From Lepidodermella squamata (Eukaryota; Animalia; Gastrotricha), in the NCBI GenBank assembly GCA_047495785.1, contig JBLDXI010000024.1, positions 1,674,001-1,738,000 of the forward strand: a stretch of DNA of 64,000 bases, given 5' to 3'. The notes under the pieces are model-generated. The model was not told the DNA's origin and ran no database searches. It saw nothing but the letters and a program-made list of their open reading frames with translations. Positions 519 to 48,690 of the stretch are shown one piece after another; position 1 is the first letter of the stretch, and the number at the start of each line of letters is the position of its first letter. The translations under genes and the position numbers were made by a program.

Positions 519-825
519 TATTTTATTTTGGCCATATTTTGTCGCTTTCAGCCAAATTTTATTAAAATTTGACAAAAAATTGTCCTAATAGAGGTCAAAC
601 AGGAAATTTAGATAACTTTTAATAAATTGGACGTCGATTTGGTCCAAAAATTATCGAATCTTAAATATTAAATAAAAATTTACCGAAAAACGGTAAAATT
701 TAAATATTGTTTAGCTCAAAACGACAGAATTTATTTAATTTCGGCTTTTAATAAAAACATTTACTTCGATCACATGGCTCTGAACATTCATTTTTTTAAT
801 TTAATTTTTTTTTTATAAAAATCAC

Positions 826-3650: not shown

Positions 3651-5287
3651 TCACATGAAGTAGAACGAGTCATTCATCCGTCCTGGCCTGAGGCCAAAAA
3701 CAGCCACTGGCCCTCCACTGCCGTTTTCGACCCGCAAATACGACAACACGCAGACGCCACCCTTGGTCGGAAATTTCGCCAAATCCTCGCCACCGCCGAT
3801 ATTTTCGATCGCAATCACGTCCGTACCAGCCAGGTAAACATGAGTCGGGTACAGCAGCTGCGATTCGAGCGAAAAATCGTCGATTAACAGGCTATCGATC
3901 GCGATGGCCGCAACTTTCCGCTCTTCAACCAAGTACCGAGCGCCATCAACTGACAGCCCTGGGAAATTTTTCGTGTATTTCTTCGGTGATTTCCAGTTAT
4001 CAGCGCCAAATCCGGTCACGAGAATGACCAAAGAATTGGACGGGATTGCGCCAAACCTTTTCTCCCATTCAGCCAGGTGTTGCGGTTCGATTGAAAAATT
4101 CGCTTTCCCGTTGTAGGGAATCTCAACTTTCAGGCAATGAAGCGGATCGTTAAGAACGCTGGGAAGGTGATTGATGTCATTTTTATCGGCGCCAAAGTGG
4201 TATGGAGCATCTGAATTCGCAAAAAATGTATTTAAAATAATTATTTATTTGAATTTATTTAAATTAATTATTTAAAATTTTTAATAAAAATTTAATTTAA
4301 ATTTGAAATAATTCCCAGAATTAATTTTTTACCTATGTGGGTGCTGAAATGGTCGAAAAATGCCAATCGCTTCGCATCGATGATTTTCGGATGGAAAACG
4401 TAGGGCGCGATCGGAACTTGTTCCGGCGGTCCGAATTCGTGGCTTAGCACTACGTCAGATTTTTTGAGGCAGCGATGCGTGACCGATTTCGTCCCAGGCG
4501 GGTAGACCACCAGATCGGCCAGGTTGATTTTCCGCGGCGGTCTCATAGCTCGCATCGAATCTGGCAGGGACGTCTCGGTTTTCAACGGTGTGAACACGAA
4601 TTTGAAGGCGTAGTACAGTTCGTCCTGTTCGTAGCCGAGGTGTTGGTACTGGTTACTACTGGGTCGAACCAGGTTGTCGAAGAAGGGCGTTCGATGCCGG
4701 ATCAAACTGTCTCGCATTGCGTCGGGCACTTTGGCATCGGAAAACCACCCTGTTGCAGCTTTTCGACTCGCTAAAGCTCGGAAAATTGATCCATCGTTGA
4801 GTTTCGTCAAATCACGGCCGAGAAATAGGACCAGCATATTCATCTTTACCTAGTTTTTTAAAATAATTTAAAAAATTTAAATTAAATTTAAAAAATTTCT
4901 TACTTCATTATGGAGCTTTTTCCTGACGGTTCCGATATCTGTTTCTCGAATGAAAATTGTTTCAATACAGCCCTGCATAGGTACTACAGGTAACATGTCC
5001 GGCTGTGTCCAAGTTGTGACCTTGTTTTGGCGAGGATCTACGCTGAGAATCGTCTCGGTGAACACCATGCGACCTTTATCGGTTTCGTTCATCCATTGGC
5101 TGTGATTGGCAAACACTTGCATGCCAACTTCGACGATGCTGCAATCGCTGCATTCTGATGTCTGGTTCCGGATGACTGCGCCTAGTCTGAGGCCGGTGGT
5201 TGCCAGCAGCGATGAAGGGTGGGCTGTTCGGGATTTTGCGGATGAACCGCCAACTATGGCTAAGATTACTAAAAGGCTCGAAAACAT
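3651..5287 (-). CDS. Secreted Cyclase-family metal-dependent hydrolase (kynurenine formamidase/isatin hydrolase-like), gene A
   Basis: Exons 5287-4904, 4849-4333, 4210-3651. Signal peptide MFSSLLVILAIVGGSSA; motif HFSTHI|DAPYH (HxGTHxDxPxH) split by an intron; FPGLS, AIAIDS, H..L....IENI, GSGGPV. No hydrophobic C-terminal tail. Confidence 0.85.
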
Positions 5288-5476
5288 TGCAAGTTGTGCC
5301 TTGATAGTGAATTGAGCTAAATTCAGGTTTGACCGTGAAAGAATAAAAAATTCACCACGCAGTTTTACTGGGTCACTATTGCGTAACAAACAAACTTCTT
5401 AAGACAAAGCAAGTGTTGCATTGTGATTTTACAAGAAAGCATCAACCGAAAAGTTGCAGTTGCGAATTCGAGATGA

Positions 5477-6140
5477 TTAAGTTTCCATCCAATGTGAATG
5501 CGTATCGATAGCCTCGATGAACGAGAGGAATGATTTGATCCGTGCGAAAGTTATCGGTCTGTTGTACCATCCATCACAACTTGGAATAAGTGAAGGAACG
5601 CCAACCAGTACCCATCGTCCGCTGTCATCAACTTGACAGACCAGAGGAGCGCCACGGTCACCAATACAGGCGTCATGGCGCCACCAATCACGTTTGTATT
5701 CATTTTCGTCTGCAATAGCGCAGATCTCATTTTCAGTGAGCTTATCCTATTTCATGAGATGAAATATTTTAATATTTGCACCTCTAAAATTGAAGTTCCA
5801 ACAGTAAATTCAAGCCTTCTAGGGATAACGTAAATGTTGAAATACTACCCAGGGCTGCCAGATTTTCAATGACCAAACTATTCGAGATGGGCTAATAGAA
5901 AAAAGTTGACATCAAGATGGGCTACTATTCGCGAATGGGCTAGTATTTGAACGTTTACGGTAATTTTCGAGTTTTTACGATTCCGAAAATAAAATAAATG
6001 ACAATTTACCTTTATTTCGTCTTCGAAATTTCCGCATCTCTTGTTGCTGATCGTTCTAACACTCATTTGCCTCAATTCACCACCTGCAGGAAAGCCACCT
6101 AGGCTATATCCTGTGACAAAGCACCGGTATATGCTCGTTG
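5477..6140 (-). pseudogene. 5'-truncated serine protease homologue (paralogue of 22089-24249)
   Basis: Two exons: YRCFVTGY..ELRQMSVRTISNKRC and DKLTENEICA..ACIGDRGAPLVC..YNRPITFARI. The upstream exons are absent, replaced by repeat sequence. Confidence 0.75.
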
Positions 6141-6489
6141 CATATAGCAAAAATCAAATAAGATCATAGTATTTTTCTCGGAATTTTACGGCGTAAAATA
6201 AACATTTATACCGTCCTGAAAGACTCTTAAAATCTTTCAAGAAACAAGATAACTTCAAGAAAATTTTAAAAAAGTTAGAAAAAAACCGTCTCACGAGACG
6301 GGACTCATTCGATAGAGGAGCGCCTCTAGTTTTCCGGAAAATTTATTTGAAATTTATTGGAAATGAAATATTTTCTCTGGGAATTTTAGAAAATAGTTAA
6401 AAATCGGAAAAATTACAATTTCGAAGAAATGTTCACAACAGCAGACGCTGTGCTGTCGATGCGCGAGAACTTGCAATATAAGTAGTAGC

Positions 6490-7430
6490 GAAATTGTTCT
6501 TTTGCAAGATTCTCCAACCTTCTCTGGCGGCAACATGGCTCAAGTTTAACTGTGAGCTGAAACAGCCGAGTGCTGTCGATATGCCATCGGCTCTCGCGTT
6601 CATTTTTTTCATTTTTTTCTATTTATTAAGGCACTTTCTTCGCCGCCGCTGCCGCGTTATTTTAGAAGCGTGCAGTAGATTATCGCGGCGAGTTTCCACA
6701 CCAAAAATGTGGTTCTGAGTGGGGAGGTATGTGACTGAGTTGGCGAAGATGCAAAAGGTTTTGCGCCATTTGTTGCTATTGTAGGCGACTCATTTTCGTG
6801 CCCACCCCGCGTTGTGTAGATGCCGTCACGTGATGGATGCGAGTGTGCACGGAATGCGACTGTTTTTGACGGCACTAACATATGTATTTTCAAGCCCGCT
6901 TCATCTGTGAGCTGACGCAGCCGAGTGCTCATGATGAGCCATCTTTGGTATGCCATTATACCAGCGGCACTCACGTTTATTTTTTCTACTTTTTCCAATT
7001 ATCACGACATTATTTGTTAACTCAGCCGCCGCTGTCTTGTTTCTATTCCAGGCAAGTCATCACGGCGCACGGCGCCCACTCCACTACTTGCCTTATCCTT
7101 GGTTAAAGTGAGGGTGGCCATTGCGCCAACTTTGAACTATAGACTAGACTAACTATAGTTGGTTATCGTTGGTGTGCCGTCACTACACGAATTCATTTTT
7201 TTCTACGTTGACTAATTATAAAGACGTATACCTCTGCCACCGCTGCCGATTAAATTTAACCGCGTGCACTAGGTTCACCCTGGTGAGTGCCCACACGAAA
7301 TGCCGTTATTTTTGGAGCTAAAATGTTCAAGCCTGGTTCCCAGATATGGACGCGCCATTGTGTATGATGAAAATATTTAGACTCAGCTAATTAGGTGCAC
7401 GAGGAAAATCGTCACGTATATGTTGTACGC
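6490..7430 (+). repeat. About three degenerate tandem units of a 300-350-bp dispersed repeat family
   Basis: Recurring tgagctga..cagccgagtgc and ttcattttttt..cgccgctgccg blocks; further copies at about 14740-15060 (+) and 17090-17500 (-). Confidence 0.7.
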
Positions 7431-8050
7431 CTATAGAGGATCTAAGCTTATACGGTATAGGCTTAAGCCTATACGGGATAAGCAATATTTTAAACTGTCA
7501 TAGCGGCCAAACCGTCAGGGTGACTATCGATCATCATATATCAATCGATTGCTGTAATTAAGGGCTATCGATTGATGCCAAATCGAATTCCGCGCGGCAC
7601 ACTCAGGGTCAAGTTTTGGCCAAAAAACGCAAATTTTCCGCATTTTTTCAACTTTGAAGGCAAAAATCATATTTCTAAAAGTTCCGCGCGGAATTCGATT
7701 TGGCACCAATCGATAGCCCTTAATTACAGCAATCGATTGATATATGATGATCGATAGTCACCCTCACGGTTTGGCCATTGTTTCGGTTGAATACAATGCT
7801 CATACCCTAAAGGCTTAAATACCGTATAGGCGTACAACATATACGTGACGATTTTCCTCGTGCACCTAATTAGCTGAGTCTAAATAGTCTAAAACTGAGT
7901 CTAGGACTACTTGGTTACAGTTGATATATACAACATATATATCAACTGTAACCAAGTAGTCCTAGCCTAGTTCAAAGTTGGCGCAATGGCCTCCCTCACT
8001 TTGACCAAGAATATGGCATGTGGACGGCGTGTCGACTTGCCTGGAATAAT
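7045..8050. mobile_element. Nested foldback/MITE complex
   Basis: Inverted-repeat pairs about 7097-7140/7968-8012, 7373-7435/7826-7887 and 7505-7597/7684-7776, plus a perfect 30-bp-arm hairpin at 7901-7965. Confidence 0.75.
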
Positions 8051-8228
8051 GAGATTAATGCTTTTTTCTCATCATCAACTTAAGGCGTGATCCAGCATGA
8101 ACCATCCGAAATGGCTTTTAATCTTTATTATTTTATTTTAAACTAATGTAAAGGAGTCGATCGATATATCGATATTAATAAGGAAATTTTCTCAAATTAA
8201 TGTTGTTTTTGCGGGAAATAAACCAGTG

Positions 8229-10650
8229 TTAAGCTGTCAGAACCTTAGAGGCCAATTCTTTGATCACACTCCACGCGTATTCTATGTCCTGTTCGGAGGT
8301 TTTCGCAGCACAAATCGCCAGTCTCAGCATGAATTTCCCCTGCGTCAGAGCATTTCTTAATTTAATTTACTTTTTTCGCAGACGATGTTTTTACCTGACT
8401 TTCGTCGGAACCAAGTGAATTCGTCCATCGCTCGTAAGCCTTGTAAAGAGATTCGGTAGGCCCATTGACGTCACCATCGCTAACTTCAATCAATCGGAAG
8501 CAAACCAGTCCCATCGTGACCTCTGCCGTTATCTCAAATCGTTTGTCAGTTTTCAGCTTATTTTCGAAAGAATGAGCTAGTTCAATCTGCTTTCTGATAT
8601 AATTCTATGCAGCAGATGTAGGGATAAAAAGACAAACTGTAAAGGTGAAAAACCTGAATTCCTCGAACTCCGAACAATCGAAGGACAAAGAAGAGCTTCA
8701 ACGCTCTGAATCTACGTTAGAGGCACATTTTCAGGCCCGCCTAAGTTTCCTCCACGCGCGCACTCTGATTGGTCGGCCACGCGCTCAATGAATGATAAAG
8801 GCTAACTTTCGAATTTACCGGCGGTTTTTATATCGAAATGAAATTCATTAAATTTGGAATCGATTGAATATGGGGTTCTCGCTCGAAAAATGTAAAGCGA
8901 AAATGTTTTACGTGCATTCAAATTAATGCGCGCACGCACTAGTAACTTGTGAGCGCGCGCGTTAACGAAAATTCAGACGACAAATTTTCATCACACGTAA
9001 AACATTTTCGCTTTACATTTTTCGAGCGAGAACCCCATATTCAATCGATTCCAAATTTAATGAATTTCATTTCGATATAAAAACCGCCGGTAAATTCGAA
9101 AGTTAGCCTTTGTAATTGCCGCGCGCGGTTTTAAAATACTAAAAACCATGTGGAGGCACGACTTAAACTTGTGCGCGCGCAATTCTGCAAGTCCCAACGA
9201 TTCATTAAATTTCAATTTCAAATACTTAATACATTCCATACGAATTTTAGATAAGAATATTCAGTTTTTACTGCTCTGTCCAATGTGCTATAATGATCGT
9301 GGACGAATTTAATTTTAAAAATAAATTGGGGTATAATTCGGGAATTTGTTAGCTCGCGTTGTGCGCGCGCTCACACGTGTTGCGCAATCGCACGCACAAA
9401 TCGCCAGCCAATAGGAGCGAGCGCGTGGAGGAAACTTAGGCGGGCCTGAAAATGTGCACGTTAGAGAGGGATTTGCCAATGCCGATAGTCCGGAATTGGT
9501 GTTTCAAGTACAGATGAGGGTCGACATTGAACGCATCCACCGTTATGAGCAAGAATGACAGCAACAACAAAATCTCAAGAAATCTCAACTGACCACTTGT
9601 GAAGCATCTTTGAACCACATGGCAGAGCAGTCGAAGTTAACTAGCATCCATTTGTGAGGGTTGAAGTTGAACGAGTCGGCGAATTCGACGCCTTTTAAAT
9701 AATGCCGATATTCCGGACAACAGAACGCACTACCAGCATAAGCGGCATCAACATGCAGCCAAATAGGTGTTTCGCACTTCTCATTGAATTCAGCGACAAT
9801 CCTGCCGATTTCCAACAAATTGTCAAAGGCACAGGTACTAGTCGTGCCAAGCGTTGCAACAACGTAAAAAGGAACATGACCCTGAGCTTTAACAGACTCA
9901 ATTGCTTGTTTCAGGGCTTCACCTCGCATTGACCCTTCGTCGTCACTCGGGACTTTCACGAAATGTTGGATGCAGCCCATCAAACCAGCTCGTTCAACAC
10001 TGGAGTGAGCCTGGTCCGAGCAGAAAGCGACCAATTTATCGATAACTCCACCTGCTGTCAAGTTGGGATTGAGTTCTTTTTGCTGGGCTATAGCTCTGCT
10101 GCGAGCAGCCAAAAGCGCTGTGAATGTTGCTTCACTTGCTGTTCCGTGAATTATGCCACCACCTTTCTGCCCAGAACTGAACAAGAAATATCCCGGGAGT
10201 TGCAACATTTTCGCCAACCAGTCCATCATAACCGTATCCAGCTAATTTTAGTTAGAGAAAAAATGTAATTAAGATATGTTGGTAAAGTGTATGTCAAGAT
10301 TTAGATGAACTCAAATTGCTAACCTCAGTGAAGCTCGGCGAGGAGGCCCATAAAAATCCTATGCAACCAATTGCATCTGACAGAATGTCAGCAATAATCG
10401 CCGGATAAGAGTTGGCCGTTTGGAAATAGGCGAAAAACCTTGTATAGAACAAAGCATTTGGTTAGTTTCATTGAAACCTTAACAAATGAACCTACTTTGG
10501 GGAATGCCAATGAACTACTCCAGGTAGTATCACTCGATTAATATCCTCCATCTCAGCTTCGAAACTATCAGGTTCTTGTGGAGCTTCCGATGGTAACTGT
10601 GGAGTCAGAAATCTAGGCTTCAGATCGGTTGGGAAAACTGGTCTTCAAGA
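8229..10650 (-). pseudogene. DDC: Aromatic L-amino acid (DOPA) decarboxylase pseudogene
   Basis: Motifs [36 protein letters not shown] (PLP lysine), DAFNVDP.LYLKH, PDYRHWQIPL, RRFRALKL, LVCFRL. Lesions: TAA in place of Gly in PL[G]RRFR; a 735-bp element inserted at the same site; frameshifts at about 9496 and 8445; acceptor AG>CG at about 9541; no intact start. Confidence 0.9.
8723..9457. mobile_element. Non-autonomous DNA transposon (Mutator-like MITE) inserted in a DDC exon
   Basis: TIR gcacattttcaggcccgcctaagtttcctccacgcgc at both ends; 9-bp target-site duplication acgttagag (8714-8722 and 9458-9466); internal perfect inverted repeat of about 118 bp (about 8797-8914/8994-9111). Confidence 0.9.
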
Positions 10651-11028
10651 CCTTCAGTGTTAGGCCTTCAAGTAAAAACTGGTTACTGAAGCTAAAGATG
10701 AAAGAATGTGTATTGTCGTTTGAGGACGAAGTACAGTGAGTGCTTAAGGTATGCAAAAGGTATGATATTATTAAAATATTAAAGCACGAGCAGTCTACGC
10801 CAGCGCTCCTCTTCGCCGTAATCTTGTGAGCGAGTTTTAATTTAAATTTTAATGAAAAAGCTATTTGTTGACAAATTCCCATCGTTAATTCAGATAGAAT
10901 ATAAAGTATAAAATACGAATTCCTCAAAACACCATACCTACTCATTTTTATTGCGTTTTTCAGAAGCCATTCGTAAGTCGTTTGTCAAAAGTAAGCTAGT
11001 AGAGAGAAAGTGAGCTAGTTGATAAAGG

Positions 11029-12863
11029 ATGAGAAGGGCCGGTGAATCAGCTGTTTCAGAGCAAAAAGTGGGAAGCTGGACTTTCTATCTGATCTACTGC
11101 AATGTTTCGATCGTTCTTGGCTCTTCGTTCCTATTTGGTTACAATCTCGGTAACAATTTGTTTTGAAAAATCGTTTCAGGGCTAATATTTGAAAATACCC
11201 CATGACAGGCGTGATAAATGCCCCGTTTGAAGTTATGAATAACTACGTCAACCAGTCATTTGCGAGAACTGGTCAAATTTTGTCAAGCGCTGAACTTAAT
11301 TCGAACTGGTCTGCTATAGTCGCTTTGTACCTAATTGGCGGCATCATCGGATCAACATGGATTCCAGTCAAAATTTCAAGCAAATTTGGAAAGTGAGAAT
11401 AATTTCGAAAATATTTGCACAACAACGTTTAATAATTATTCAATTTATAAGGAGGAATTCTTTAATTTTGGGATCTGCTATTGGGTGCGCTGGCGCTGTG
11501 ATCTTGTTTGTGACACCCTGGACTGAGAGCCACATTCCACTGTACATTGGAAGGACGGTGCTAGGATTTCAAGCTGGTTTCACACTGGTGATCGCGCCTT
11601 CGATAATTATAGAGCATGCACCAGGCAGATTGAGAGGCATTCTCGGCAGTTTCATCGGCATCGGAATTAGCCTCGGTCTGCTCGTTTCAAACATTCTGGG
11701 TCTCAGTTTTGTGCTAGGCAAAGAGTCGACGTGGCAATATTCATTTCGTAAATTTGAAAAAATAATTCTTATTTGAATCACAGTATATTTCTTTCAAGTA
11801 TTCGAACTTGGCATATATCTAATGGATGGAGCTGCCTTGTTTCTTGTCGTCGAAAGTCCTAGAGCTTTAATTGACCAGGGCAAGGAGGACCAAGCTATTG
11901 AAGGTAAAATATCTCACTTATTATTGCAATGAGATGGCGTATCAACACCTGTTTTCAGCCTTGAAAAAGCTTCGTGGAAGATCGGCGAAAGAAATCGAAG
12001 ATGAGCTGACGGAATTGAAAGAAATTTCAGCAGCCGAGGCGGAGGTCGAATTAGTTTCAATCAAAGCCATTTTCAAAAATCGCGCACTATGGTGGCCTCT
12101 AATTATCGTCGTGAATATGCTTATATGCGCTCAACTGACCGGTCTAGCCCCGGTTTTTTTCTATGCAGCCAACGTACTCTACTCCGCTGGTTTACCTTCT
12201 GACATGGCAGGGCTCGCGAATTTTGGCGTATCAGTCGCAAATCTCATCGGAAACATCCTCAATGCGGTAATCATCGATCGAGTTGGCCGGCGTCCTTTGA
12301 TGATCATCGGACTGCTCGGCACTTCTCTGGCTCAAATTTTGCTGGTCATCGTTTTGAGCTATAACGTAAATATTTCAGCTCCAAAAAATATTCGACCAGG
12401 ATTTTTTAAAAAAAACTTTCCCCATTCTCAGGAAAATTTCAAATTTTCTTTTCATGAAACATTTTTACAGGTTTTCCAAGCGAGCATTTTGGGTTTTGCT
12501 CTGTTTCACCTGTTTTTTGCGTCTGGACCAGGGCCGATACCTTGCTTCATCGCTGCTGAATTATTCGATCAAAACGCGCGACCAATGGGGATGAGCGTGT
12601 CAATGTTCGCTAGTTGGTCTTGCAACATCATCAGCAGCTTCATTTTCCCCGCCATGCAGATCACAATCCACCAGTATTCCTTCCTGCCTTTCGCTGCCGT
12701 TGCTGCTCTTGAATGTTTGTTTTGCCTGCTTTTCCTACCGGAAACAGGCGTCGGTTTGACAGATGTTACGTCAGCGGCCGAACGGTACTCTCCTGGGCGC
12801 CCGCTTATTCAACTGAAACTGGGCTGCAAAAATCGGCAGAAAGAGGACAACTTGCCATATTAA
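11029..12863 (+). CDS. SLC2/GLUT-family MFS sugar-porter homologue
   Basis: Six exons splice in frame from ATG 11029. Motifs FGYNLG|VINAP, KFGK|RNS, EHAPGRLRG, VESPR, IDRVGRRPL, GPGPIP, AELFDQNARP, LPET. Confidence 0.88.
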
Positions 12864-13149
12864 GTGTTCCTGTCGCATATATTGCTTATGATGATAAATT
12901 CTAACATTGGCTGAAACTCCGGGGCTTATTTTAATTCATTTTCAAATAAAACATACGGTTCATTGCACTTGTAACCTGTTGGCTAGAAAACACAGGGCAC
13001 GATGCATGATTATCAATAAAGGTTTGAGGAAATCGGATTGAAATTGGAAGTTCCCATGGGGTTGCAGTTACACTAACGAAACGCCGGTTACGCCGGCACC
13101 GGTTATTCCGCTCGCCTCGCACATAAACGCCGGCTGACGTTGCAAATCT

Positions 13150-13275
13150 ACAGAAACTCGGCGATTTATGTGGCGGAAACCACCGGAGGACATAGGGCCG
13201 AATACGCGTGGAGTGTGTGATCAAAGAATCGGCCTCAAAGATTCTGACCGTGTAGTAACACTGGTTTATTCCTAC
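13150..13275 (+). pseudogene. Relic of a second DDC last exon, inverted relative to 8229-8340
   Basis: gaatacgcgtggagtgtg(tg)atcaaagaatcggcctcaaagattctgac..taacactggtttatt closely matches the DDC 3' end (EYAWSVIKELASKVLT*); similarity resumes at about 13826 (tttatttcccgcaaaaa). Confidence 0.7.
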
Positions 13276-15142
13276 ATGCGCATGGTAAAATTTAGCCATT
13301 GGGAAATTGAATTTATCTATGGCTACAATTAATTTCTCTATGGCATGATACTGCCACAAATTTGGGCAGCATTTTGCTCAGAATTAGCCTCAAAACCCCC
13401 CATATTAACAAAAATGTGACAAAATGAGGCAATAACGAGGTCGTCGAAATCTCTTGCTGTTTGCCGTCGCGATGCAGATCCGGTTTTCTTCTCGAATTCG
13501 CGGTTTTGAGCAGCAACGGAAATTCAGCGACTAGCCATAGCAACGCTAGAGGCGACGACGACTGGTTTCTCGGCGGGTATTCGACCGGCAAAATTGACCA
13601 AAATCCATGGTTAATTTCCGCCGCGACCTGGATACCATTTTGCAGCGAGCGGATGGCTTCTGTTATTGCCAGTCTTCCAAAAGCCGCGAGCTGCGATACA
13701 GATGCATTGATTTCTGCGTGAACCCAGCTGAACCCCTCTCTGAAACCCCTCGACTCGTTTGGCTGCGCCCGGGGTTTCAGATCGGGAGGAAATTTCATTT
13801 CTCTATGGCTAGCTATAGAATAATCCTTTATTTCCCGCAAAAACTACATCAGCTTTGAAATTTTATATTCTAAATTACTCCCATGAATGTCCCTAAGATT
13901 CTTCCTCACTTATATCACCGACAAAATTTAGTTAAACAATTTTAGGGGCTCAGCATTCAGATCTGAATTCAGCTTTTCTAGTTTTTCCTCGCGACAGTTT
14001 TTGCAGCACAAAAATCACGCACTCCGCCTGTATAAGTCTGGGTGGATAGGACGAATTCGGCCGGTTTAATTGAATTTCAATGTCGTCGTCATTTTTCATT
14101 TCCAACTCTGAAAAATTTACACAGAGGTCAATGAGACTATGACGGACACGGTGGTCTTTTTTGTCAGATCAAAAAATGCTTAGAAACCTATGCAATTTTA
14201 AGTTGAAAAAATCGAAATTTCATTCTCAGGTTGACTATTTTCATATTGCAAGTATGTCCTGACAATGCAAACGGTGTCCCGGTCTCAAAACCTTGTAGCC
14301 AACATCAAAATGCAATATTCCTCAGGAGGGCGATCAACAATTCATCAAATTCAACTTTCTGCGAATTTTCAATGTCGAAATTCCAAAATCGTCCTTCCCG
14401 CCGTGAAAGGATTAATTTGAGAGAATTTTGTTCATTCATATTGATCAACCCCTTTGCATTAGTTGAAATAAAATAAACCTTCAATCAAATTATAATTAAA
14501 CGCCATTTCGGGTGATTCAGCAGTACCACGCCTGAACTAGATGATGACACTAAGGTGCGCGTTCGAAGCACAGACAATTGACACGACAAAGCCAGTCTTA
14601 TATATTATCACTGCTACCTGCTATCTACTGCCACGATGATAAAAAAATGCTAGTTTTTTCTACTCACAAAAAGCTTGAAGCGCATGTTCCTATTCCAAGC
14701 ATTACGGCACCGACTTTAGTACATACTTATTCTTGGTTTAATTGAGGGAGCCCACTGCGCCTATTTTGAACCACGCTAGACTAGTTGGTTATTGTTGGTA
14801 TGCAGTCAGCACGCAAATTCTTTGTTTTCTGCGCTGACTAAATATCAAGAAAGATAAGCCATCATTAATATGCTTTCGGTAATCGCGTAAATTTTTTTCT
14901 AATTTGCCTAATTACCAAGACACATACCTTCACCGCCGCTTCCGAGTTATTCTGGCGGACACGCCACTGTACGATGGTATGATGACAGTCCCCAGAGCCG
15001 CTAATTAAGTGCACGAAGAAATTCGTCAAGTATGCGCTTGGCGCATATATAAACAGCGCGACCTTTGTCAATTTCCCAGTATTACCGCAAACTTCGCGTA
15101 TATCTTTGTATGATTTCATCACGAAGCTCAAACGTTGGTTCA

Positions 15143-16606
15143 ATGTGCGAAAACAGATGCGTTTTTCTTATCGAAGGCGTCGAACAACCAGCAAAAGCTC
15201 TCGGCTGTATATACAGCGCCATTAAGGAGATCAATGGTGCCGAAGTCGAGCGACTGGAAATTCGAAATAACAAATTCCACCAAAGCAAGCGCGACTTCTT
15301 GGTCGAAACTAAATTCTATAGCAAAGAATCGTGCGATGGCCAAGAGTTGCTGGATGCTTTGAGGAACTGTAAGATTGATTCACATATCGAATTAATATCG
15401 TCGAAAAATTCAATTGCAACCGAGCATTGGTACCCGAAAGACATTTCTGAGTTGGATAAATGTCTCGAGTGCGTAACGAAATTCGACCCGACGGAGGATT
15501 CTGGTCATCCAGTAAGTGGCTAAGATATTCCAATTCTTGGTTAATTTGTTAAATTTCAGGGATTCCATGATAGTAATTACCGTGCCCGCAGAAATGCGAT
15601 TGCCAACATCGCTTACACCCATAAAACGTAACTAATTCATCTTAATCTACAGAATCCTACTTCATTGTAATTTTCAGGGGATCTCCGATACCTCGAGTTG
15701 AATTCACCCGCGATGAGGTATCAACCTGGTGTATGGTGTATTCTAAGCTAAAAGAGCTGCACAAGACGCATGCTTATTCCGGATTTATCCGCGTCTTCAA
15801 CCTAATGGAGAAAGAAGGCATCTACGCGCCCGAGTTCATTCCTCAGCTCGAAGACGTCTCGAGTTTTCTGAAGAGGCAGACTGGGTTTCAACTACGACCT
15901 GTCTCTGGCTTGCTGTCATCACGACACTTTCTTTATAGCTTGGCTTACCGCGTATTCATGTGTACCCAATATATTCGGCATCCATCTTCGCCACATCATA
16001 GCCCGGAACCGTGAGTTTCTCCTCGGTAATTCCGATTGACCTGAACAAATAATTTTTTCCTAGAGATTGCATTCACGAACTCCTGGGCCATGTTCCAATG
16101 CTTGCCGATGCTGATTTTGCTGATTTTTCGCAAGAAATCGGAATAGCCTCCCTCGGCGCATCAGATGACGAAATCGAGAAGCTCTCAACGGTAATAATTT
16201 ATTAGTAATGATAAATTATGCTCTGAATTGTTTTATTAATCAGCTCTACTGGTTTACGGTGGAATTCGGTCTATGCCGAGATGAAGCTGACGACGGAAAT
16301 GTCAAGGCCTTTGGCGCCGGGCTGCTGTCTGCCTTCGGCGAGTTGCAGCATGCATTATCTGGCAAGCCTGAGATTCGAGAATTCGAGCCTTCTAAAGTCG
16401 CAGTTCAAAAGTATCAAGACGCTGAATACCAGGCGGTCTACTTTGTCTGCGATTCAATCGAAAAGATGAAACAAAGGTTTCGCGGATACGTGCAAGAAAA
16501 TTTCCCAAATCTCGGAAGAGAAGAGCAAAAAGAAAGGTCAGAAAAACCGGCTGCTACGGTCATTTACTATCCTATACTCTGCGACGAACCAGTTCTATAC
16601 TTTTGA
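15143..16606 (+). CDS. TH: Tyrosine 3-monooxygenase (tyrosine hydroxylase)
   Basis: Exons 15143-15511, 15560-15627, 15678-16010, 16064-16190, 16244-16606 (alternative ATG at about 15110). ACT-like N-terminus; iron ligands in HELLGH and VEFG; TH-type features ELDKC..VTKFDP, HSPEP, HVPML, EKLSTLYWF, YQD..YQ. Confidence 0.88.
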
Positions 16607-16828
16607 ATGATGACTTAAAGAATATTATTCGAAATGGCGATGATTTATTATTATATCTATCTATCCAAGTGTTAATCATGCGATGGTTTTTTCAGTGGAT
16701 GATATATAAACATTGTAATAAATATTCTATAAAATAATAAACAAAAATATGCTTATCCATAGTCGTTGTTGATTCCGTTTCAATAATATGGGGCTCTCTG
16801 CAAGCAAAACATCGAACAATGTTGCAGT

Positions 16829-16855
16829 AATCGAATCGAATCGAATCGAATCGAA
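16829..16855 (+). repeat. (AATCG)n microsatellite
   Basis: aatcgaatcgaatcgaatcgaatcgaa. Confidence 0.8.
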
Positions 16856-17089
16856 CAAAACACAATCGAAAAATCTTAAGACAAATCGTAAAAAGTGCAT
16901 TTTTTTTCTTGCGAATATTCTCACATTCAACATTCGAATTTGTACTTGAAATTTCAGGTGAAAACTGAGATATCGAGAAAAATCACGCTGCTTTTACTTG
17001 TCCGAATCGCATACCTTGGCGAAGTTCTTCGTGTTCCGAATTACCGGCTCTACGGATTGTCATCATGTTATGGCGCGTTTATTCGGGAA

Positions 17090-17500
17090 AGAGCTTTAAA
17101 ATACTTCAGCGCCGACAAAATTACTCGCATTCCATGTACACTCGCCTCCATCATGTGACGGCTTCTACACATCGCACGATAATGAGTGGCCCAGAATAGC
17201 AACAAATAGCGATGAAAGTTTTGCATCTTCGCCAACTCAGTCACATACCTCCCCACACAGAACCACATTTTTGGTGTGGACACTCGCTGCGATAATATAT
17301 TGCACGTTTCTAAAATTACTCGGCAGCGGCGGCGAAGATATTAATTGTCTTGATCTTGATAATTGAGAAGAAAAAAATGAACGTGAGTGCCAATGGCATA
17401 CCAAAGATGGCTTATTAACGGCACTTGGCTGTTTCAGCTCACAGTTGATGGCGCTGCGGCCTCCTTTAATAGCGCAGTAATATACCCAGGAAGTAAAACA
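17090..17500 (-). repeat. Inverted copy of the 6490-6860 repeat, abutting the acetyltransferase start
   Basis: ttttgcatcttcgccaactcagtcacatacctcccc..cagaaccacatttttggtgtgga is the reverse complement of about 6695-6757. Confidence 0.8.
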
Positions 17501-17503
17501 TAG

Positions 17504-18133
17504 ATGGCGAATCACCAGTTTTTTGTCAAAACGTTGACTCGCGATCGCCTCGATGAGGCTGCCAATGTGTTGGCGAACTCATTTATGCAGAATCACATTC
17601 CCACGATCCACCTCAAACAATTTACTCCCGACAAGTTCCCTATATTTGTCCGCGATTTCATCATCGAGGCATGCATCGATCAACATGTTAGCGTTTTCAT
17701 TGAAGACTCTGCTGGTAAAATGCTTGGCGTTGCTGTCTCGGAGATATGGAATATCGAGGAGAATCCTTCTCTGCCTGATCAAGACGAAGAGATGTTTATC
17801 TTGATGGGAGAACTCCAAAAATTGTTGCCGCCAGAGATGGTTGCAGAATCTTGCAAAGGCACAATTTTGCATATCAGCATGGTCGCGACTCGCGTTGGCG
17901 AACATGGCCGAGGTGTCGCGACTCTACTAATAAAATCAATGGTCGAATTCGCACTGAAGAATCAATTCAAATACGTCTTCGGCGATTGTACATCGGCTGA
18001 GACGCAACACATATTTTTGGACAAATCGGGCTTCGCGAACGCTGGGGAAATCTTGTACGATACATTCAGCGAGAAGCTCAAGGGCTGCCCTGGCAAAATT
18101 GTTTTAGCCGTCAAGAAATTGGTCCAAAATTAG
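17504..18133 (+). CDS. GNAT acetyltransferase, arylalkylamine (dopamine) N-acetyltransferase-like
   Basis: Single-exon 209 aa. Acetyl-CoA motif ATRVGEHGRGVATLLI preceded by LHISMV and followed by GDCTSAETQHIF..SGF, the layout of insect Dat/AANAT-like enzymes. Confidence 0.75.
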   Translation: MANHQFFVKTLTRDRLDEAANVLANSFMQNHIPTIHLKQFTPDKFPIFVRDFIIEACIDQHVSVFIEDSAGKMLGVAVSEIWNIEENPSLPDQDEEMFILMGELQKLLPPEMVAESCKGTILHISMVATRVGEHGRGVATLLIKSMVEFALKNQFKYVFGDCTSAETQHIFLDKSGFANAGEILYDTFSEKLKGCPGKIVLAVKKLVQN

Positions 18134-18892
18134 GCTATCGGAATTGTACCATGGAGGATAACTATGCGACCCAAGGAAGCACTTGACACAGTAACAACTT
18201 GATTCATGAAAATTATCGATGCTATCATGAATAAAGCTATACTCTTAGCGATACGCCAAAACAACCACTTTGATGACGCATTGGATCGTACTTTTAGGAG
18301 CCTAGCGTAATGTTGAATTACGCTCGGCTGTTTTGAGCATTGATTGTAATTTACATTTACGTTCAAGCGTCCATAAAACTATATTAATGGTATAATGGTT
18401 GTCTAGGCGCGTCGCTAACGATAAAGTAAAAATCGAATATAGCAGTAAAGTTACGGAATAAAATAAGCTAACTTATTTTTAAGAAATATTGGGCATGACC
18501 GAAATAATAAAGGGCGGGGGCAAAGGTAACTCAAAATAACGAAGAGCAGAAACATATTAGTAGGCAGGGGCTTGTCACTTGCATGTCCTCCATGATAGAC
18601 ATAATAGACTACAGATCACCTGCTCACGAGAAAATTGCTAGCCCGTGTCAAGATCTGAAACTGCAATATTTTACGTCACCAGGTGAAGTAGCCACCCGAA
18701 ATCACTTGTCACTTGTGTAGATTTTGCCGTATTTTTTTATAGTGAAGTTGACAAGTGATTTTCAGGTCACGCGACCAAGAAGCAAAAACTCTTGATGAAT
18801 AATTTCGGCACACATAAATGTACTAGCGTGTCAGATCTCTCTTTTCATTCATCTATGCTGCGATCTAATTTGCACTGATACAAGTTGTTGTA

Positions 18893-21043
18893 ATGTTATC
18901 GAACTTTTGTATCTGTGCTGTTTTGTTGGCTGGGTTTCAACTAGCAGCCAGCAATATTGTCCCTTCGTCGAAACAAGCTCTGAACCGTTACCAGCTTGGT
19001 TTTATTCTGAATAAGAAGTCAATTCAGGGCAGCAATCTCGATTTCTCGTCCTTCGAATATTTCCGAAGTGATGGCGAGAAGAGCACGATGCGAAACATGA
19101 CCGCAACGGTGGACGTTAACTCGGTCAGCACCGGCAACAACTACGGCGTTACAACCTACACGACCTCAGTGAAATTGAGCGAGCCGCCGAAGCCCGATGA
19201 CGATTTCAGCGGCCTTGTTGAGAGCCATTACTGTCTCAAGACCTTCATCGGAACCTTCGACGACCTAATTTCTTTTTATGACAAGGTAAAGCACATATTG
19301 GTAGCGGCCGATTAAGTCTGATTTAGACTATTAAAGGTGACAAGTGACAATGAAAATCGGGTCTTAAATAATGTTTTTATTAAATTATTGACAAAAGCGT
19401 ATGACATCTATCACTGCCATCTTCAACTGACATTAAAAAATGTACCAGCGATAATTTTTATTAGTTCAATCGATCCCAGCCAAAATTGTGTGAATATCAC
19501 GAATCGTTTCTTCAACCCATTTGCATTATTGAAGTTCTGGGGCATTTTTTTAATTTTTACTCATTTATTACTCCATTTTTCGACAACGAATGAGATTATT
19601 TTTTCATAAAAAATCAACTAAAAGTTCAACTCTAATGTGATTTCCAGGTGAGGTCCTCGGTCCACCTTCCATATTTTGAATTTTCTATTCGTTTTTATTT
19701 CGGGTTATGGGTATCCCAGCTCTTGGTAGAGAATGTCAATTCAAAGTATTCGATTTCATTCTCGCGTTGCCTCATATTCATTAATTTTCAATAAAAAAAA
19801 CTTTTTTTAATAACGTGATCAGCTATCGCCGGTAATAACCGAGTCTACTCCTATGCAATACGTCCTGTTCATTATCACAGAGAAGTTTGACTCGTCAAAG
19901 TTCAGCGGCAAAGTACTTGCAGCAGCCAATGATAAGAATTACGTCAGGCTTACTCTCGGTTTCGTCCGCAACATCGGCAGGCTGTCGCAGTCAGACCGCG
20001 ATTCCATCATTCACGCCAGGATTCCGTTCTTCGAAAATCTCGTCCTGAAGCAGTCGGAAGATCTTGAAAACACAGATTTGCCTATCTACGCCTTCTCTCA
20101 CGTTTTCAGCTTGTTCAAGAACTACAGTTCGGTTTTCAAAAGCGAAACTGAAACGAAAGAGGAAGACGGCTTTCTGCTCTCTGTTGTCAATCTCGCCGAC
20201 GTCGTGTTGTTCGAAGCTGACGATAAATTGGAAAGCTACTGCAACAATCCCAAGAAGGACGTCTCCGTTCTGAGCCACCGCCTTAATACTGACAACTACC
20301 CGATGGCCGCTGGACTTCGCCGGCCGTCGGTGAAAATTGAAGTTCCGACCAAGGGAACCTGGCTGACGTTCGCCGGCCAGACTGGCACGCACCTGACTGC
20401 GCCCTTCCACTTCGATGAAAAAATGTCGAAAACCGCTGATTTGCCGAAGAAAACTTTCTTCGCACCCTGCGTCCGCATCAAGATTCCTTACTCATCGCTT
20501 GCTGAGAATAAAATCACCGTGTCTTTGATCAAGGATGCTGTTATGACCAGCAGCATTCCCAATGACGCCATCTTCGTGATTCACACCGAATTCGGCGAAG
20601 ACCATTGGATTCATGAGCCCGAAGCCTACAACACCGATTTTCCGGTTTTGGAAGAAGAAGCCGCCAAATACTTGGTTGAAGAGTACCAAGTAGCTGCTAT
20701 TGGCATTGACTCGCCGTCGCTGGATGATGGCAAGGATAATAAGTTCAAGACTCACGGTTATTTGGCTTCGAAGAACATTCCGACCCTGCTGAATCTCCGC
20801 CTGAGCGACTCGCTGATTGCTGAAAATGGCGCCCGTTGCGTGTTGACCTACCTGCGATCTGTCGATGGTACCGATGCTCCCCTGGGTCTGTTTGCTTTGA
20901 ATGGCTACGACTCGACGACTGTCTCGCCGATCGCGAGGTCAGTTGCCCCGAAAGCTCTTACTGAGGCCAAGGTGACGCTAACAACCGCTGATTCGACCTC
21001 GAGCACTTCAACTGTTTCACCGATCAGCTCTTCGACTGAAAAG
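18893..21043 (+). CDS. Secreted Cyclase-family protein, gene B (inactive motif; inverted duplicate of gene F with a decayed 3' end)
   Basis: Exons 18893-19285 and 19823-21043. Signal peptide; QTGTHLTAPFH in place of HxGTHxDxPxH; long near-identical stretches with 46612-48690; the terminal GPI exon survives only as a fragment at about 21225-21310. Confidence 0.8.
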
Positions 21044-21428
21044 GTACACTTTTATTTCAATATATTTTAACATTAGGCTAACATTTCTCTGAAAAATGCT
21101 TTGATTGTTGAATTTTCTGAAATTTTGTTTTTCATGACTAGGCTCAACCTGAACTTGAAGCTTCAGCACAGATCAATGTTGATGAACTATTGGAAAATGC
21201 TTCGGTGCTAGTTTTAATGCCGCTACGACGACTATTACAACACGCAAGCTCGAGTCCCCTGTTGTCGAAGCTGATAGGCAAAACCGCTGAATAATGACAA
21301 GTTGATAATGTAACCGGTGAGACCCGAAATTATCCGCCCGAATGGGTTAATAAATTGAAATGCTTCTGAAATTAATTTAAGTAAAACAAACCCAAGAATC
21401 ATAACATTTTATTGGGTTTTTTGAAAAT

Positions 21429-22088: not shown

Positions 22089-24249
22089 TTATTTGTTGGT
22101 ATCGGTAGATATTTCCTCAATGAAAGAGAGGAATCGGTTGATCCGTGCGAAAGTTATCGGCCTGTTGTACCATCCATTACAACTGGGAATAAATGAAGGA
22201 ACACCAGCCAGTACCCATCCTCCGTTTTCATCAACTTTACAGACTAGAGGGGCACCGATGTCACCAAGACAAGCGTAATTGCGTTGAGGATCATATTTGT
22301 AGTATGGCTGTTCTCTTGCAATTGCGCAGATCTCATTTTCAGTGAGCCGATCCTGTTTCAGAAGAGGAAAGTGACTATACAGGGCAACGCAGAAGTTGTG
22401 CTGAAGACGCAATTCCTACATTTTTGTCATCGTCAGGAATCATTAGGCATTAGGACCAATGGATTTCCTGTTACATACTCTGACACTTCTTCAACTTCAT
22501 ATTACGTGAAAATTCAGAAGTTCATCAGGGAATGGATTGGCTATGTGATTCCTAATGATGGAAAAAATGATGTTAGGAATGGCGTCTTTAACATAACTCC
22601 TGCCTCGCCCTGTAAATATTTGCATCAATAAAATTGAGGTTCCAGCAATATATTTAAGCATTGCTAAAATGTTTTTATTTTGTCGCGAAATTTCGTGCTT
22701 CAGAAAAGTAGGTGATTTGCGCTATGATACAGGACGTTGATACTGGTTCTGCAGACCGTGATATGCCTGCAGTTTACGTATGATCTGCAGACGTAAACTA
22801 ACTCTGGATATCCCAAAATACGCGTAATGGTGAAATCTATCGGTTAGGCATACAATTCTAAGATAATTAAGATAATTAAGATATCAAGGATGGCGCTAAA
22901 CTCGAGAAAGCATATTTTGGTGAGATGGACGCTCAATGTAATGCTGAAACCCCGAATTCAAGGTTTACACCTTTGGCGCAACTAAGGAATACGTTGAACA
23001 ACAAGAAATCGTAAATAGAATAACAATGAAATGAGGAAGCATCAGAGCGTATTATACCTACTTGTATTTCCTGCACGAGAGTCTCGCACCTCTTGCTGCT
23101 GATCGTCGCAACTTTCATTTGTTCCAATTCTTCAGAACCTCGGAGGAAGTCACTAGCTAGGCCAAATCCTGTGACAAAGCACTGATAAGATGAGTTTGGG
23201 CGAAGCCTGGGGGACCTTGTGCGAAGGAAGACGTCTCCGAACAAGCAAGCAGGCTGGATTCGATCGTTAAAAGAGGCCCCGGGAAGCTTCAATACGATGA
23301 CTGCTATTCCCGGTAGAGATTCATATGAATGGGGAGAAACCATGATTTTTTCTGCCGCCAGCATTGCTCCGGTCGTATTCAATTGATGAAGGCCTGCCCT
23401 TATTTCCAACTTTGACGCATTGCGCGGTGTTGAACGAAAACAATTGGCCGAGGTGACAACAAGGCGAGGTGAAATTAAAGCTCCACTGCAAATATGACTG
23501 CCATTGTATCGTATCGAAATATGCCACGGCCATGAGTGAGGTCGGCTCACGACAATTGCGTCGACTTTAGGAATAATGCCGAATATATGACCAAAGTGAC
23601 CGCCACCACTGAACTTATTTGTTTCATGATCTTGCATGACATAATCATAAGAGAAATCACGATTAGCCGCGCGACGAAGCATCTTGCGACTTTTTGAACC
23701 ATTGAGGCCTATAGGTTTTATAACGGGCTTCCCACAATTTAGTTCGTTGCCAGTCCAGCTCGTTGATGATTTGTTGCATCGTATCGGTTCCAAATCAGCT
23801 TTAAAACCATTCACAACCGTCGCGTTGCTGGAGTAACGTCTGAAGATCACAGAAATTTGATTGGTCGATGATTTTATCGGACTGGAGATTGAGGAGTTGC
23901 AGGCCGAAAAAATAAGCTGCTTGGTCCCATTTCCATAGACGTCATAAACTTGTAAGGAATTACTCGAACATTTTTTGCTAGGCGAAATGCCTGAATAGCC
24001 TTTAATACCAGAGATAGTGCGAAGGAGAATACATGAAATTTTACCTGTCAAAGTGAACTCAATGCAGAAACCTTTTGGGTTGGAAAAAGACCACAGAAAA
24101 ATCTCATTTGCAACCCGAAATTGTGGCGCAACATTGCTGTTTGGATAACCAAATGTAATTTTTCGATCGGGATACCCACGTGCATTTCCCACATTAATCT
24201 GGATAGCAAGCAAAAGTGGCAATATTTTGTAATATTTGACCGTAATCAT
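22089..24249 (-). CDS. Secreted CUB-like domain plus trypsin-fold serine protease homologue (catalytically inactive)
   Basis: Signal peptide; CUB-like C..S.PIKSSTNQISVIF..NGFKA; CGKP; SRPHSWPWHISI..HICSGALI..VTSANCF (His>Asn); last exon about 22352-22089 with CLGDIGAPLVC (Ser>Ile). Confidence 0.8.
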
Positions 24250-32228: not shown

Positions 32229-33346
32229 TTATTTCAGCTTGTGCCTAATAACATCAAGAATATCGAAGGTTAGCAAAGAAATTTCAGAGGGAGAAAGAGT
32301 CGAATGTTCAATCACAGATAAAACAGTTGAAAAATGTTCGTTGATAATGCGGCGCCGTTCACTAACGGCCGGCTGTTCAGTCGCGACAAGAGTCTGCATA
32401 ATGGCCGCGATGTTGGGATCGACGCCGTTGTCGCTGTTGCTGCCCGCCTTCCGCTTCCTCGAACCGGCCGGTGTCGGAGTTGAAGCGGCCGAAGCGGGTG
32501 TTGAGCCGGAAGTTGATACTTGAGTTGCTTGACTTTCGAGGAAGGGTAGATCGTCATCGGGCGCGGGTGTGCTTGCACCGGAACTCGGCACGGACGCAGC
32601 CGAATCAGGCCTTGCACGCGGATCACCGGGTAAGTTCGACTTGGTGCTGTAAAAAAATAAGAAAAAAAATTAGAAAAAAATTATTAAAACAAAATTATCA
32701 AAATTATCAAATTAACACACCTTGTTTTGTAAATGATTGTGTCAGCCAAGAAGGTCATTGCCAAGTAATACGGAAACCCGCCCGACTTCGATTCGTCGGG
32801 GTTGGCGGCGGAACCGCTGGCCGTGCGCGTCTTGTGAGCTTTCGAGAACCGGTCGCGTAGATCGTTGCAAATGTCGCAGACGTCTTTGGCGGTGTACGGT
32901 CGCGACGGCTCCTTCGAAGTGGCCGGCATCCAGGGCAGACGAACAGCCAGCTCATTCCACAGCTTCGACCTGTGAACGCTGTCCTTGTAGAGAGCGTCCT
33001 TCGTGTTCCAGAGCGGCGGGTGGTATTTAACGAAATTGATGATGTCGATATTGACGGCGTGCTTGTGTTCGGGTAGACTCAGCACCGGCGACGAAATAGT
33101 CGAATGGCTGGCCTCGGCTTGCTTGGCAGGGTGGTACGACAGCGACTGGCTCGACTGTGGATAAGACGGCTGGCTCGGCTGTGAGTAGGGCGGCTGACTG
33201 CTCGAAATTTGCGAAAAAACCGGCTGGGTGTTCGGAATCGGCGAATAAACAGGCTGGCTGTCATCGAACTGACCCGAGACTTGCTCCGCTTGGCTTGAGC
33301 TTTTGCCGTTTTGCTGCGGTGCTGTTGACGGGAAACACTGCTCCAT
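32229..33346 (-). CDS. Harbinger ORF1 MADF/Myb-SANT DNA-binding protein
   Basis: Exons 33346-32721 and 32646-32229. IINFVKYHPPLWNTKDALYKD..R.KLWNELA..LRDRF (MADF); basic RKRK; C-terminal BESS-like helix. Confidence 0.8.
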
Positions 33347-48600: not shown

Positions 48601-48690
48601 CAGAGCTTGTTTCGACGAAGGGACAATATTGCTGGCTGCCAGCTGAAACCCAGCCAACAAAACAGCGCAGGTAAAAAAGTTCGATAACAT
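45684..48690 (-). CDS. GPI-anchored Cyclase-family protein with a Ser/Thr mucin-like stalk, gene F (inactive motif)
   Basis: Exons 48690-48298, 48024-46612, 45920-45684. QTGTHLTAPYH; long Thr/Ser-rich region; tail SAGVASMPSMAVVLVSALLARLAFI. Confidence 0.85.

Follow-up and report, generated by a model that had tools for sequence, protein, structure and literature searches.

The gastrotrich Lepidodermella squamata is represented here by one window, the 64,000 nucleotides (nt) at positions 1,674,001 to 1,738,000 (forward strand) of contig JBLDXI010000024.1 in assembly GCA_047495785.1; all positions below are counted from the first letter of this window. It has about 42% G+C, is dense in genes and contains introns of 48-80 nt. 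Four genes lie together within 8.2-18.1 kb of the window: a DOPA decarboxylase (DDC)-type gene on the reverse strand, a GLUT/SLC2-like transporter gene, a tyrosine hydroxylase (TH)-type gene, and an intronless gene for an N-acetyltransferase of the GNAT superfamily with 209 amino acids (aa). A sequence-only reading had claimed the adjacency of DDC, an SLC2 transporter, TH and a GNAT within 10 kb, with no unrelated gene in between. Pfam and matches to solved structures placed all four genes where they had been claimed. Read depth, repeat comparison and Pfam showed that the spacers separating them hold only transposon and repeat DNA, with high-copy repeat at 13288-14470 and, besides, terminal inverted repeat (TIR) elements, so that both parts of the claim stood. 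An unrelated gene hidden in the 12.9-15.0 kb gap was ruled out, as the gap is filled by high-copy repeat and a relic of DDC. The genes thus do form a physical cluster, and their linkage is non-random. It is very unlikely that three non-homologous enzymes of one pathway would meet in four gene slots by chance if they were unlinked. Part of the co-occurrence of TH, DDC and GNAT is accounted for by segmental duplication. The features are collected in Table 1.

Table 1. Features of the TH/DDC/GNAT block, matches of its inverted arms, and surrounding genes in the window (paired positions are left arm / right arm; X2 is a read set described in the text).
Feature	Position	Strand	Basis or remark
DDC-type aromatic-L-amino-acid decarboxylase pseudogene	8232-10644	-	Pfam, solved structures, tblastn
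Non-autonomous TIR transposon, 735 bp	8723-9457		Inserted in the DDC coding exon encoding WQIPLGRRFR
GLUT/SLC2-like major-facilitator transporter, about 6 exons	11029-12863	+	Pfam Sugar_tr; head-to-head with the DDC pseudogene
Second-DDC relic: last exon, stop codon, start of 3' flank, frame broken	13133-13270	+	Inverted match to 8217-8319
High-copy repeat DNA separating transporter and TH	13288-14470		X2 depth 1600-10300, many internal joints
119-nt inverted repeat pair bracketing TH	14979-15095 and 16948-17066		74% identity, E 3e-12
TH-type tyrosine 3-monooxygenase gene	15110-16606	+	Pfam Biopterin_H, TH-first ranking
GNAT, Dat/aaNAT/A654L fold group, single 209-codon open reading frame, intronless	17504-18133	+	Profile search, AlphaFold (AF2) model, Foldseek
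GNAT relic, 48 nt, residues 107-121	6488-6535	-	tblastn, 11/15 residues
TIR element, 54-nt terminal and nested 138-nt and 85-nt inverted repeats	7086-8021		Separates DDC 3' flank from spacer
Inverted match: DDC last exon and stop	8319-8217 / 13160-13270 (local alignment to 13133)	- / +	79% identity
Inverted match: DDC 3' flank	8201-8069 / 14411-14547	- / +	73% identity
Inverted match: TIR-element terminus	8013-7939 / 14728-14801	- / +	81% identity
Inverted match: spacer (right copy just upstream of GNAT)	6895-6548 / 17093-17446	- / +	77.5% identity over 369 nt
Inverted match: GNAT coding, 48 nt (right copy inside GNAT)	6535-6488 / 17823-17870	- / +	90% identity
NOX-like gene with EF-hand	788-2995	-	FAD_binding_8 2.4e-10; weak EF-hand in upstream exon 1999-2313
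PF04199 "cyclase"-family gene	3651-5389	-	Left of the block
PF04199 "cyclase"-family gene	18893-21070	+	Right of the block
Two trypsin-like genes, alpha-kinase, MADF/Harbinger element, 6-7 more cyclase-family genes, tRNA-Pro, TGF-beta-receptor-like gene	Right of 18893-21070		

The decarboxylase copy is a pseudogene. Its central exon (9588-10241, reverse strand, 218 open codons) is intact and keeps the pyridoxal phosphate lysine in the motif NPHKW. This exon matched Pfam Pyridoxal_deC at 1e-80, and its best solved relative was DOPA decarboxylase (1js3, 1.8e-82); pig and human DOPA decarboxylases, at about 1e-80, ranked above histidine and tyrosine decarboxylases. The lesions were read from the three reverse-strand frames together with tblastn, using nine non-human fragments of aromatic-L-amino-acid decarboxylase (AADC), and by this search the gene is the sole DDC-like locus with a body in the window. 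The frame shifts repeatedly along the gene, leaving no uninterrupted reading frame for the whole protein. A transposon sits in one of the coding exons, with 55-nt terminal inverted repeats at 89% identity, an internal 124-nt inverted repeat and a clean 9-bp target-site duplication ACGTTAGAG at 8714-8722 and 9458-9466. The 23-nt terminus of this element occurs nowhere in the window except at its own two ends. When the element and one target-site duplication were removed, an in-frame TAA remained at the Gly of PLGRRFR. One frameshift, with the loss of about 9 loop residues, lies between LYLKHQ and DYRHWQIPL (near 9490-9505), and a second one near 8440-8460 parts TESLYKAY from DGRIHLVPTK. No AG acceptor stands ahead of the VDAFNVDP segment, and the place expected for the first ~30 residues holds stops, with no recognisable N-terminus or N-terminal exon. 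The frame breaks were also considered as small introns, which was rejected: there is no room for them, and the family sequence runs straight on in another frame. The earlier caveat that this DDC copy is a pseudogene was thus confirmed by several independent lesions. As the DDC is dead, the copy in the window alone cannot run the route from Tyr over L-DOPA and dopamine to N-acetyldopamine. A protein search with the DDC exon returned only fragments of at most 62% identity, with full-length proteins falling outside the length window, and gave no clue to a close paralogue.

The hydroxylase gene consists of exons 15110-15511, 15560-15627, 15678-16010, 16064-16190 and 16244-16603, followed by a stop, with four GT-AG introns of 48, 50, 53 and 53 nt. 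Two of its exons matched Pfam Biopterin_H (4.5e-40 and 3.5e-31). Against solved structures, exon 3 scored 8.6e-32 with TH, 1.6e-27 with phenylalanine hydroxylase (PAH) and 1e-25 with tryptophan hydroxylase (TPH), and exon 5 scored 9.4e-28, 8.7e-21 and 7.7e-18, respectively. In both large catalytic exons, therefore, TH came first, PAH second and TPH third, with margins of four to ten orders of magnitude. The 2-His-1-Glu iron triad is kept: HELLGH is encoded by exon 4, and exon 5 supplies the Glu of YWFTVEFG. Exon 5 also carries the TH-type Asp (QKYQDAEYQ, aligned with human QPYQDQTYQ), which we take to be the counterpart of rat D425 that sets tyrosine specificity. An identity as PAH or TPH was ruled out by the TH-first rank in two exons and by this Asp. 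The TH catalytic core is intact.

The acetyltransferase gave only a weak Pfam match. In a phmmer search against solved structures, the viral protein PBCV-1 A654L scored 4.5e-10 and mosquito aaNAT2 0.25. An exhaustive search of 1.84 billion representatives returned 82 matches, the best with 34% identity and an E-value of 1.7e-18. A profile of 28 sequences (the window protein plus 27 matches) detected A654L (3qb8) at 7e-45, followed by Aedes aaNAT2 (4fd5, 4e-28) and Drosophila Dat (8e-22 to about 1e-21); weaker matches were the Ebony C-domain, at 2e-11, and the N-acetyltransferases of flies for polyamines and agmatine, at about 1e-10. The AF2 model reached a pLDDT of 93.7. Its best Foldseek matches were 3qb8, Dat, the Ebony C-domain and aaNAT2 with TM-scores of 0.76-0.82, and the values of 0.76-0.79 to Dat, aaNAT2 and Tribolium AANAT indicated a Dat-like fold. 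The acetyl-CoA motif GRGVA is intact. No match was found by a word-indexed protein search with the GNAT and only 6 distant proteins with the 28-sequence profile; an exact look-up of the sequence found no record, and a metagenome scan for close relatives found none.

The closest GNAT relatives that could be placed lie on intron-free contigs beside genes for DNA polymerase B, an SNF2 helicase, a subunit of RNA polymerase, and Erv1/Alr, Nudix and DnaJ proteins, a context that, judged by gene content, is giant-virus-like. One relative is on an IMG/VR contig, found by a viral scan with a 6-sequence alignment. In a quick maximum-likelihood tree (IQ-TREE), limited to matches of 150-280 aa (which left out P0131, P0145, P0168 and P0173), the GNAT fell within a group of 14 rows that includes P0124 and P0127, both of giant-virus context; this group was sister to an A654L-like group and apart from the mite homologue. 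The SH-aLRT values were 89 and 86, no starred set holds the GNAT, and its branch is long. As a separate observation, the A654L-type acetyltransferase seems to be widespread in uncultured giant viruses, on metagenome and Logan contigs, with DnaJ genes as pairs.

The transporter exons cover positions 16-440 of the Sugar_tr profile. Its best solved relatives are GLUT3, GLUT1 and GLUT4 (also GLUT5), and the family motifs GRR, ESPR, GPGPIP and PETG are present. In GLUT1 and GLUT3, glucose is contacted by Gln-Gln and Asn of transmembrane helix 7 (TM7) and by Glu and Trp of TM10. Aligned with GLUT4 and GLUT3, the window carrier reads FFASGPGPIPC against FFE.GPGPIPW, which changes Glu to Ala and Trp to Cys, and the TM7 motif QQLSGIN reads AQLTGLA, with the first Gln and the Asn lost. 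The glucose-contact residues of GLUT1/GLUT3 are thus not all conserved, and its substrate may therefore not be glucose; another substrate is plausible from the sequence. Monoamine carriers belong to other families (SLC18, SLC6, SLC22). The sequence-only reading had inferred a cluster dedicated to making and exporting an N-acyl catecholamine, perhaps for tanning of cuticle, eggshell or adhesive and apart from neuronal copies. The export part could not be upheld, as the transporter is of the GLUT family, with no link to catecholamines.

Two read sets were compared with the window as contigs of at least 90% likeness: X1, a 2015 run that we guess to be probable RNA, and X2. The X2 depth was 176-336 over TH exons 3-5, 188-297 over GNAT and 244-318 over the last transporter exon, so that these coding parts showed 2-3.5 times the flanking depth. 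Two distinct 352-nt X2 contigs were found on GNAT, with 0 and 29 differences. The raised depth and the two GNAT contigs indicated that paralogues at ≥90% identity exist elsewhere, in agreement with the earlier suspicion that the cluster is one of several paralogous copies. The four differences listed for TH in the X2 contigs were all synonymous, and a divergent copy of the transporter in both X1 and X2 differed at 11 synonymous and 11 non-synonymous codons. X1 contigs cover TH, GNAT and the last transporter exons, and no X1 depth was observed in the bins between TH and GNAT. In one X1 contig precisely the TH intron 16191-16243 (GT..AG) is missing, which indicates that X1 holds spliced RNA, either of the window TH or of a closely similar paralogue. 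Over GNAT, the X1 contigs are about 7% different from the window and may be from a paralogue. Over 13288-14470 the X2 depth was 25-100 times single-copy (baseline ~95; unique flanks 92-107), and the open reading frames there match no Pfam family. Like this stretch, 18213-18400 is a repeat of very high copy number; the X2 depth of the two reaches about 100 times the single-copy level, and the contigs have many internal rearrangement joints.

Self-comparison of the window, in which inverted matches were sought, detected five matches around the block that are collinear, spacers included (Table 1). The right-arm DDC relic translates to EYAWSV and to VIKESASKILTV plus a stop in two different frames. 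The left-arm GNAT relic reads MLPPEKVGESCKRTI versus LLPPEMVAESCKGTI in the intact gene. The left arm thus keeps the pseudogene decarboxylase and 48 nt of GNAT, and the right arm keeps the intact GNAT and the last exon of a decarboxylase. One X2 contig has a joint 17446>17823 with 12 letters between, which is exactly the left-arm junction; this supports the assembly, of which X2 is possibly the source. The joint had also been considered as a deletion allele of GNAT, which was ruled out by its identity with the left-arm relic. A single terminus related to the 7086-8021 TIR element stands in the right arm at 14704-14850. TH is located inside the right arm, with the 3' flank on one side and the spacer on the other, and no TH relic was detectable in the left arm by self-comparison. 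On this comparison the locus is best described as what is left of a segmental duplication, in inverted orientation, that copied a unit comprising the DDC 3' end, spacer and GNAT. In the ancestral unit, a DDC-type gene would have been followed by GNAT about 1 kb downstream; this unit would have been duplicated in inverted orientation, and the two copies would afterwards have lost complementary parts. TH may have been in the ancestral unit and been deleted on the left, or it may have moved into the right arm later. As the last-exon relic of DDC, the GNAT relic and the spacers between are collinear, the decarboxylase-then-GNAT adjacency is inferred to predate the duplication.

Our preferred interpretation, which we consider somewhat better than an even bet, is that the locus is a rearranged and partly decayed copy of a recurrent, lineage-specific catecholamine-pathway cluster family, whose members are TH, a DDC-type decarboxylase, a GNAT of the Dat/A654L type and a GLUT-like carrier. 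In such a family TH, with iron and tetrahydrobiopterin, would convert Tyr to L-DOPA, AADC would convert L-DOPA to dopamine, and the GNAT would form N-acetyldopamine from dopamine and acetyl-CoA. The GNAT would thus acetylate the amine made by the decarboxylase, a functional pairing that would fit their adjacency before the duplication. This old adjacency is the best argument in the window for functional pairing. If a cluster is defined as adjacent non-homologous genes of consecutive steps that are all potentially functional, the window copy falls outside the definition, as its middle enzyme is a pseudogene. The TH and GNAT, if they still work together, would depend on an AADC from another locus, such as one of the paralogous clusters.

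Several observations weigh against this interpretation. The GNAT lacks the catalytic Glu of Dat: the F..(D/E)EP motif reads FMQNHIP, and the profile aligns this motif column to FFKDEPL of Dat, in which E47 is the catalytic Glu and the target of the E47N and E47D structures. The column is acidic in 24 of the 27 aligned GNAT relatives (23 Glu, 1 Asp), and is occupied in the window protein by His31 or Ile32, depending on gap placement. Vertebrate AANAT uses His as base; by analogy, a His acting as base in place of the Glu would be conjecture. The C-terminus of TH is ambiguous. Similarity to human TH ends 48 residues before the human C-terminus, and the unspliced frame ends at 16603, without the tetramerisation helix; if a possible 56-nt GT-AG intron at 16537-16592 is spliced out, the stop would instead fall at 16735-16737 and a helix-like segment would be gained. 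No X1 RNA contigs cover the 3' part of TH. The spacer of the duplication, with shorter copies at 6901-7007 and 14854-14951, may be a low-copy repeat, and the duplication would then rest mainly on the DDC last-exon relic, the 3' flank and the GNAT fragment. At the likeness used for the contigs, the spliced TH form and the X1 coverage of GNAT may be a paralogue's, and X2 may be the run behind the window assembly and hence not independent. Finally, the nearest characterised relative of the GNAT acetylates polyamines: PBCV-1 A654L is a polyamine acetyltransferase by the title of structure 3qb8 and in PMC7019647, which cites Charlop-Powers et al. 2012. The earlier description of the GNAT as AANAT-like therefore holds up in part: its fold and superfamily are those of insect Dat/aaNAT, but its nearest relatives lie on giant-virus-like contigs, the nearest characterised one is a polyamine acetyltransferase, and the catalytic Glu is replaced. 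By sequence the substrate may be an arylalkylamine or a polyamine.

The genes could also still form a working module, with TH, GNAT and transporter co-expressed and handling an N-acyl catecholamine, the decarboxylase supplied in trans from a paralogous cluster, and the loss of the local, redundant DDC costless. The open frames of TH and GNAT, the confident GNAT model, the purely synonymous differences of TH, and the presence of probable-RNA contigs over TH, GNAT and transporter exons but over no intergenic bin all suit this idea. However, the X1 GNAT contigs at ~7% difference may report a paralogue, the GNAT lacks the catalytic Glu and may act on another kind of amine, and GLUT-type carriers are not known to carry monoamines. 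We regard this idea as possible but rather unlikely.

Another explanation concerns the GNAT itself, which might be unrelated to catecholamines: it would be an acetyltransferase of the A654L type that acts on polyamines or diamines, was possibly gained from a giant virus or its host lineage, and lies beside TH with no further connection. The polyamine enzyme A654L is its best match in both sequence and fold (for the activity, as given in PMC7019647). The closest homologues are on contigs free of introns, next to genes for DnaJ, Nudix, Erv1, RNA polymerase and DNA polymerase B, and one relative is in IMG/VR; the quick tree groups the GNAT with giant-virus-context sequences and apart from the mite homologue, and the gene is intronless versus 4-6 introns in its neighbours. 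But the identity to the giant-virus-context relatives is only 27-34%, the clade support is moderate (no starred set) and the branch long, and the insect members of the fold group include both arylalkylamine and polyamine enzymes, so that the family does not tell the substrate. The GNAT was, moreover, paired with a DDC-type decarboxylase before the duplication. We judge this explanation unlikely, slightly more so than the preceding one. That the block is a neutral by-product of a duplication- and transposon-rich region, to which segmental duplication brought copies of metabolic genes with no pathway meaning, is improbable: it is embedded in tandem arrays of the PF04199 cyclase family on both sides, is full of TIR elements and high-copy repeats, and two of its "cluster" pieces are relics, but TH, the DDC-type enzyme and the Dat-fold enzyme stand for three consecutive steps, whose adjacency is very unlikely for unlinked genes, and the decarboxylase-then-GNAT adjacency is older than the duplication.

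Around the block, the NADPH-oxidase-like gene at the left end of the window (788-2995, reverse strand) is NOX5/DUOX-like. NOX5/DUOX-like oxidases serve tyrosine cross-linking of extracellular matrices in some animals. PF04199 (kynurenine-formamidase-like) genes stand on either side of the TH/DDC/GNAT block in mirrored orientations. The N-terminal part of the right-hand gene (18888-19335) is 92% identical to 48247-48695 in the large downstream array. The PF04199 family is one of aromatic amide hydrolysis, and a tie to N-acyl aromatic amines is conceivable from this family assignment; an Atlas search with the neighbouring cyclase-family protein returned no usable match. Three direct-orientation matches of 73-81% identity join 5512-6124, to the left of the block, with 22115-23182, which separates the right-hand cyclase and trypsin-like genes; they may be either a further duplicated segment or a shared repeat. 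At 32684-34206, a MADF-domain open reading frame adjoins one for a DDE_Tnp_4 (Harbinger/PIF-type) transposase, with a local G+C peak of 49%.

Tight animal clusters of non-homologous metabolic genes for consecutive steps are rare, and most of the known cases are from recent years. If our preferred interpretation of a recurrent, partly decayed cluster family is right, a compact and repeated cluster of TH, decarboxylase, N-acetyltransferase and carrier would be a new kind of animal cluster, with genes of a neurotransmitter pathway as its parts. Such a cluster would suggest that a dopamine derivative is used in bulk outside the nervous system, for example in tanning, adhesive or defence, which the window does not prove. 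What can be read in the window is turnover of the cluster family by duplication and decay, an acetyltransferase in an unexpected, virus-associated branch of the Dat fold group, and a decarboxylase-acetyltransferase pairing that is older than the local duplication. More tentatively, and with clear doubt, at least three TH / GLUT-like carrier / AADC / GNAT clusters may together amount to a true biosynthetic gene cluster of an animal, making an N-acyl catecholamine, with an acetyltransferase from the otherwise mainly giant-viral A654L family. The window would then display birth-and-death dynamics (inverted duplication, reciprocal gene loss, transposon hits) as in plant and fungal clusters.

Each component can be compared with a known relative. 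The window carrier has Sugar_tr and the family motifs in common with class I/II facilitative hexose transporters (GLUT1, GLUT3, GLUT4, GLUT5). These transporters have the Glu and Trp of FFE.GPGPIPW and the motif QQLSGIN, whereas the window carrier has Ala and Cys and AQLTGLA. The GNAT belongs to the fold group of insect Dat (3te4, 5gi5) and Aedes aaNAT2 (4fd5), with TM-scores of 0.76-0.79 and profile E-values of 1e-21 to 4e-28, and has the acetyl-CoA motif and the C-terminal (S/T)xxx(S/T)QH.F..K.GF region in common with them. It differs in its low identity of 12-19%, in the change of E47 to His or Ile, and in its subfamily. PBCV-1 A654L (3qb8) is its best match by single sequence (4.5e-10), by profile (7e-45) and by fold (TM-scores 0.78/0.82). 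The identity to A654L is 24%, however, and the window GNAT lies in an animal chromosome beside TH, with an altered EP motif.

At the level of the whole locus, our literature search found no report of TH-DDC-AANAT linkage. The Drosophila Ddc cluster is reportedly a dense neighbourhood with many genes that affect catecholamine metabolism and cuticle formation, and it resembles the window as a dense animal gene neighbourhood around a Ddc-type gene. Unlike the window, it is said to hold neither TH (pale) nor the dopamine N-acetyltransferase gene; it is not known to comprise the enzymes of consecutive steps or to occur as repeated paralogous units. Animal biosynthetic bundles are already known, and the inverted duplication structure is what is new here. 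In the sponge oro pathway, an animal biosynthetic gene "bundle", genes of primary metabolism were gathered and repurposed (Kim et al., J Am Chem Soc 2026, PMC12833800). The oro genes are scattered over a large region among unrelated ones; the bundle is shared by the producing species, and five of its proteins were validated biochemically (PMC12833800). In contrast, the genes of our window lie within only 10 kb, one of the four is dead, and their functions are predicted.

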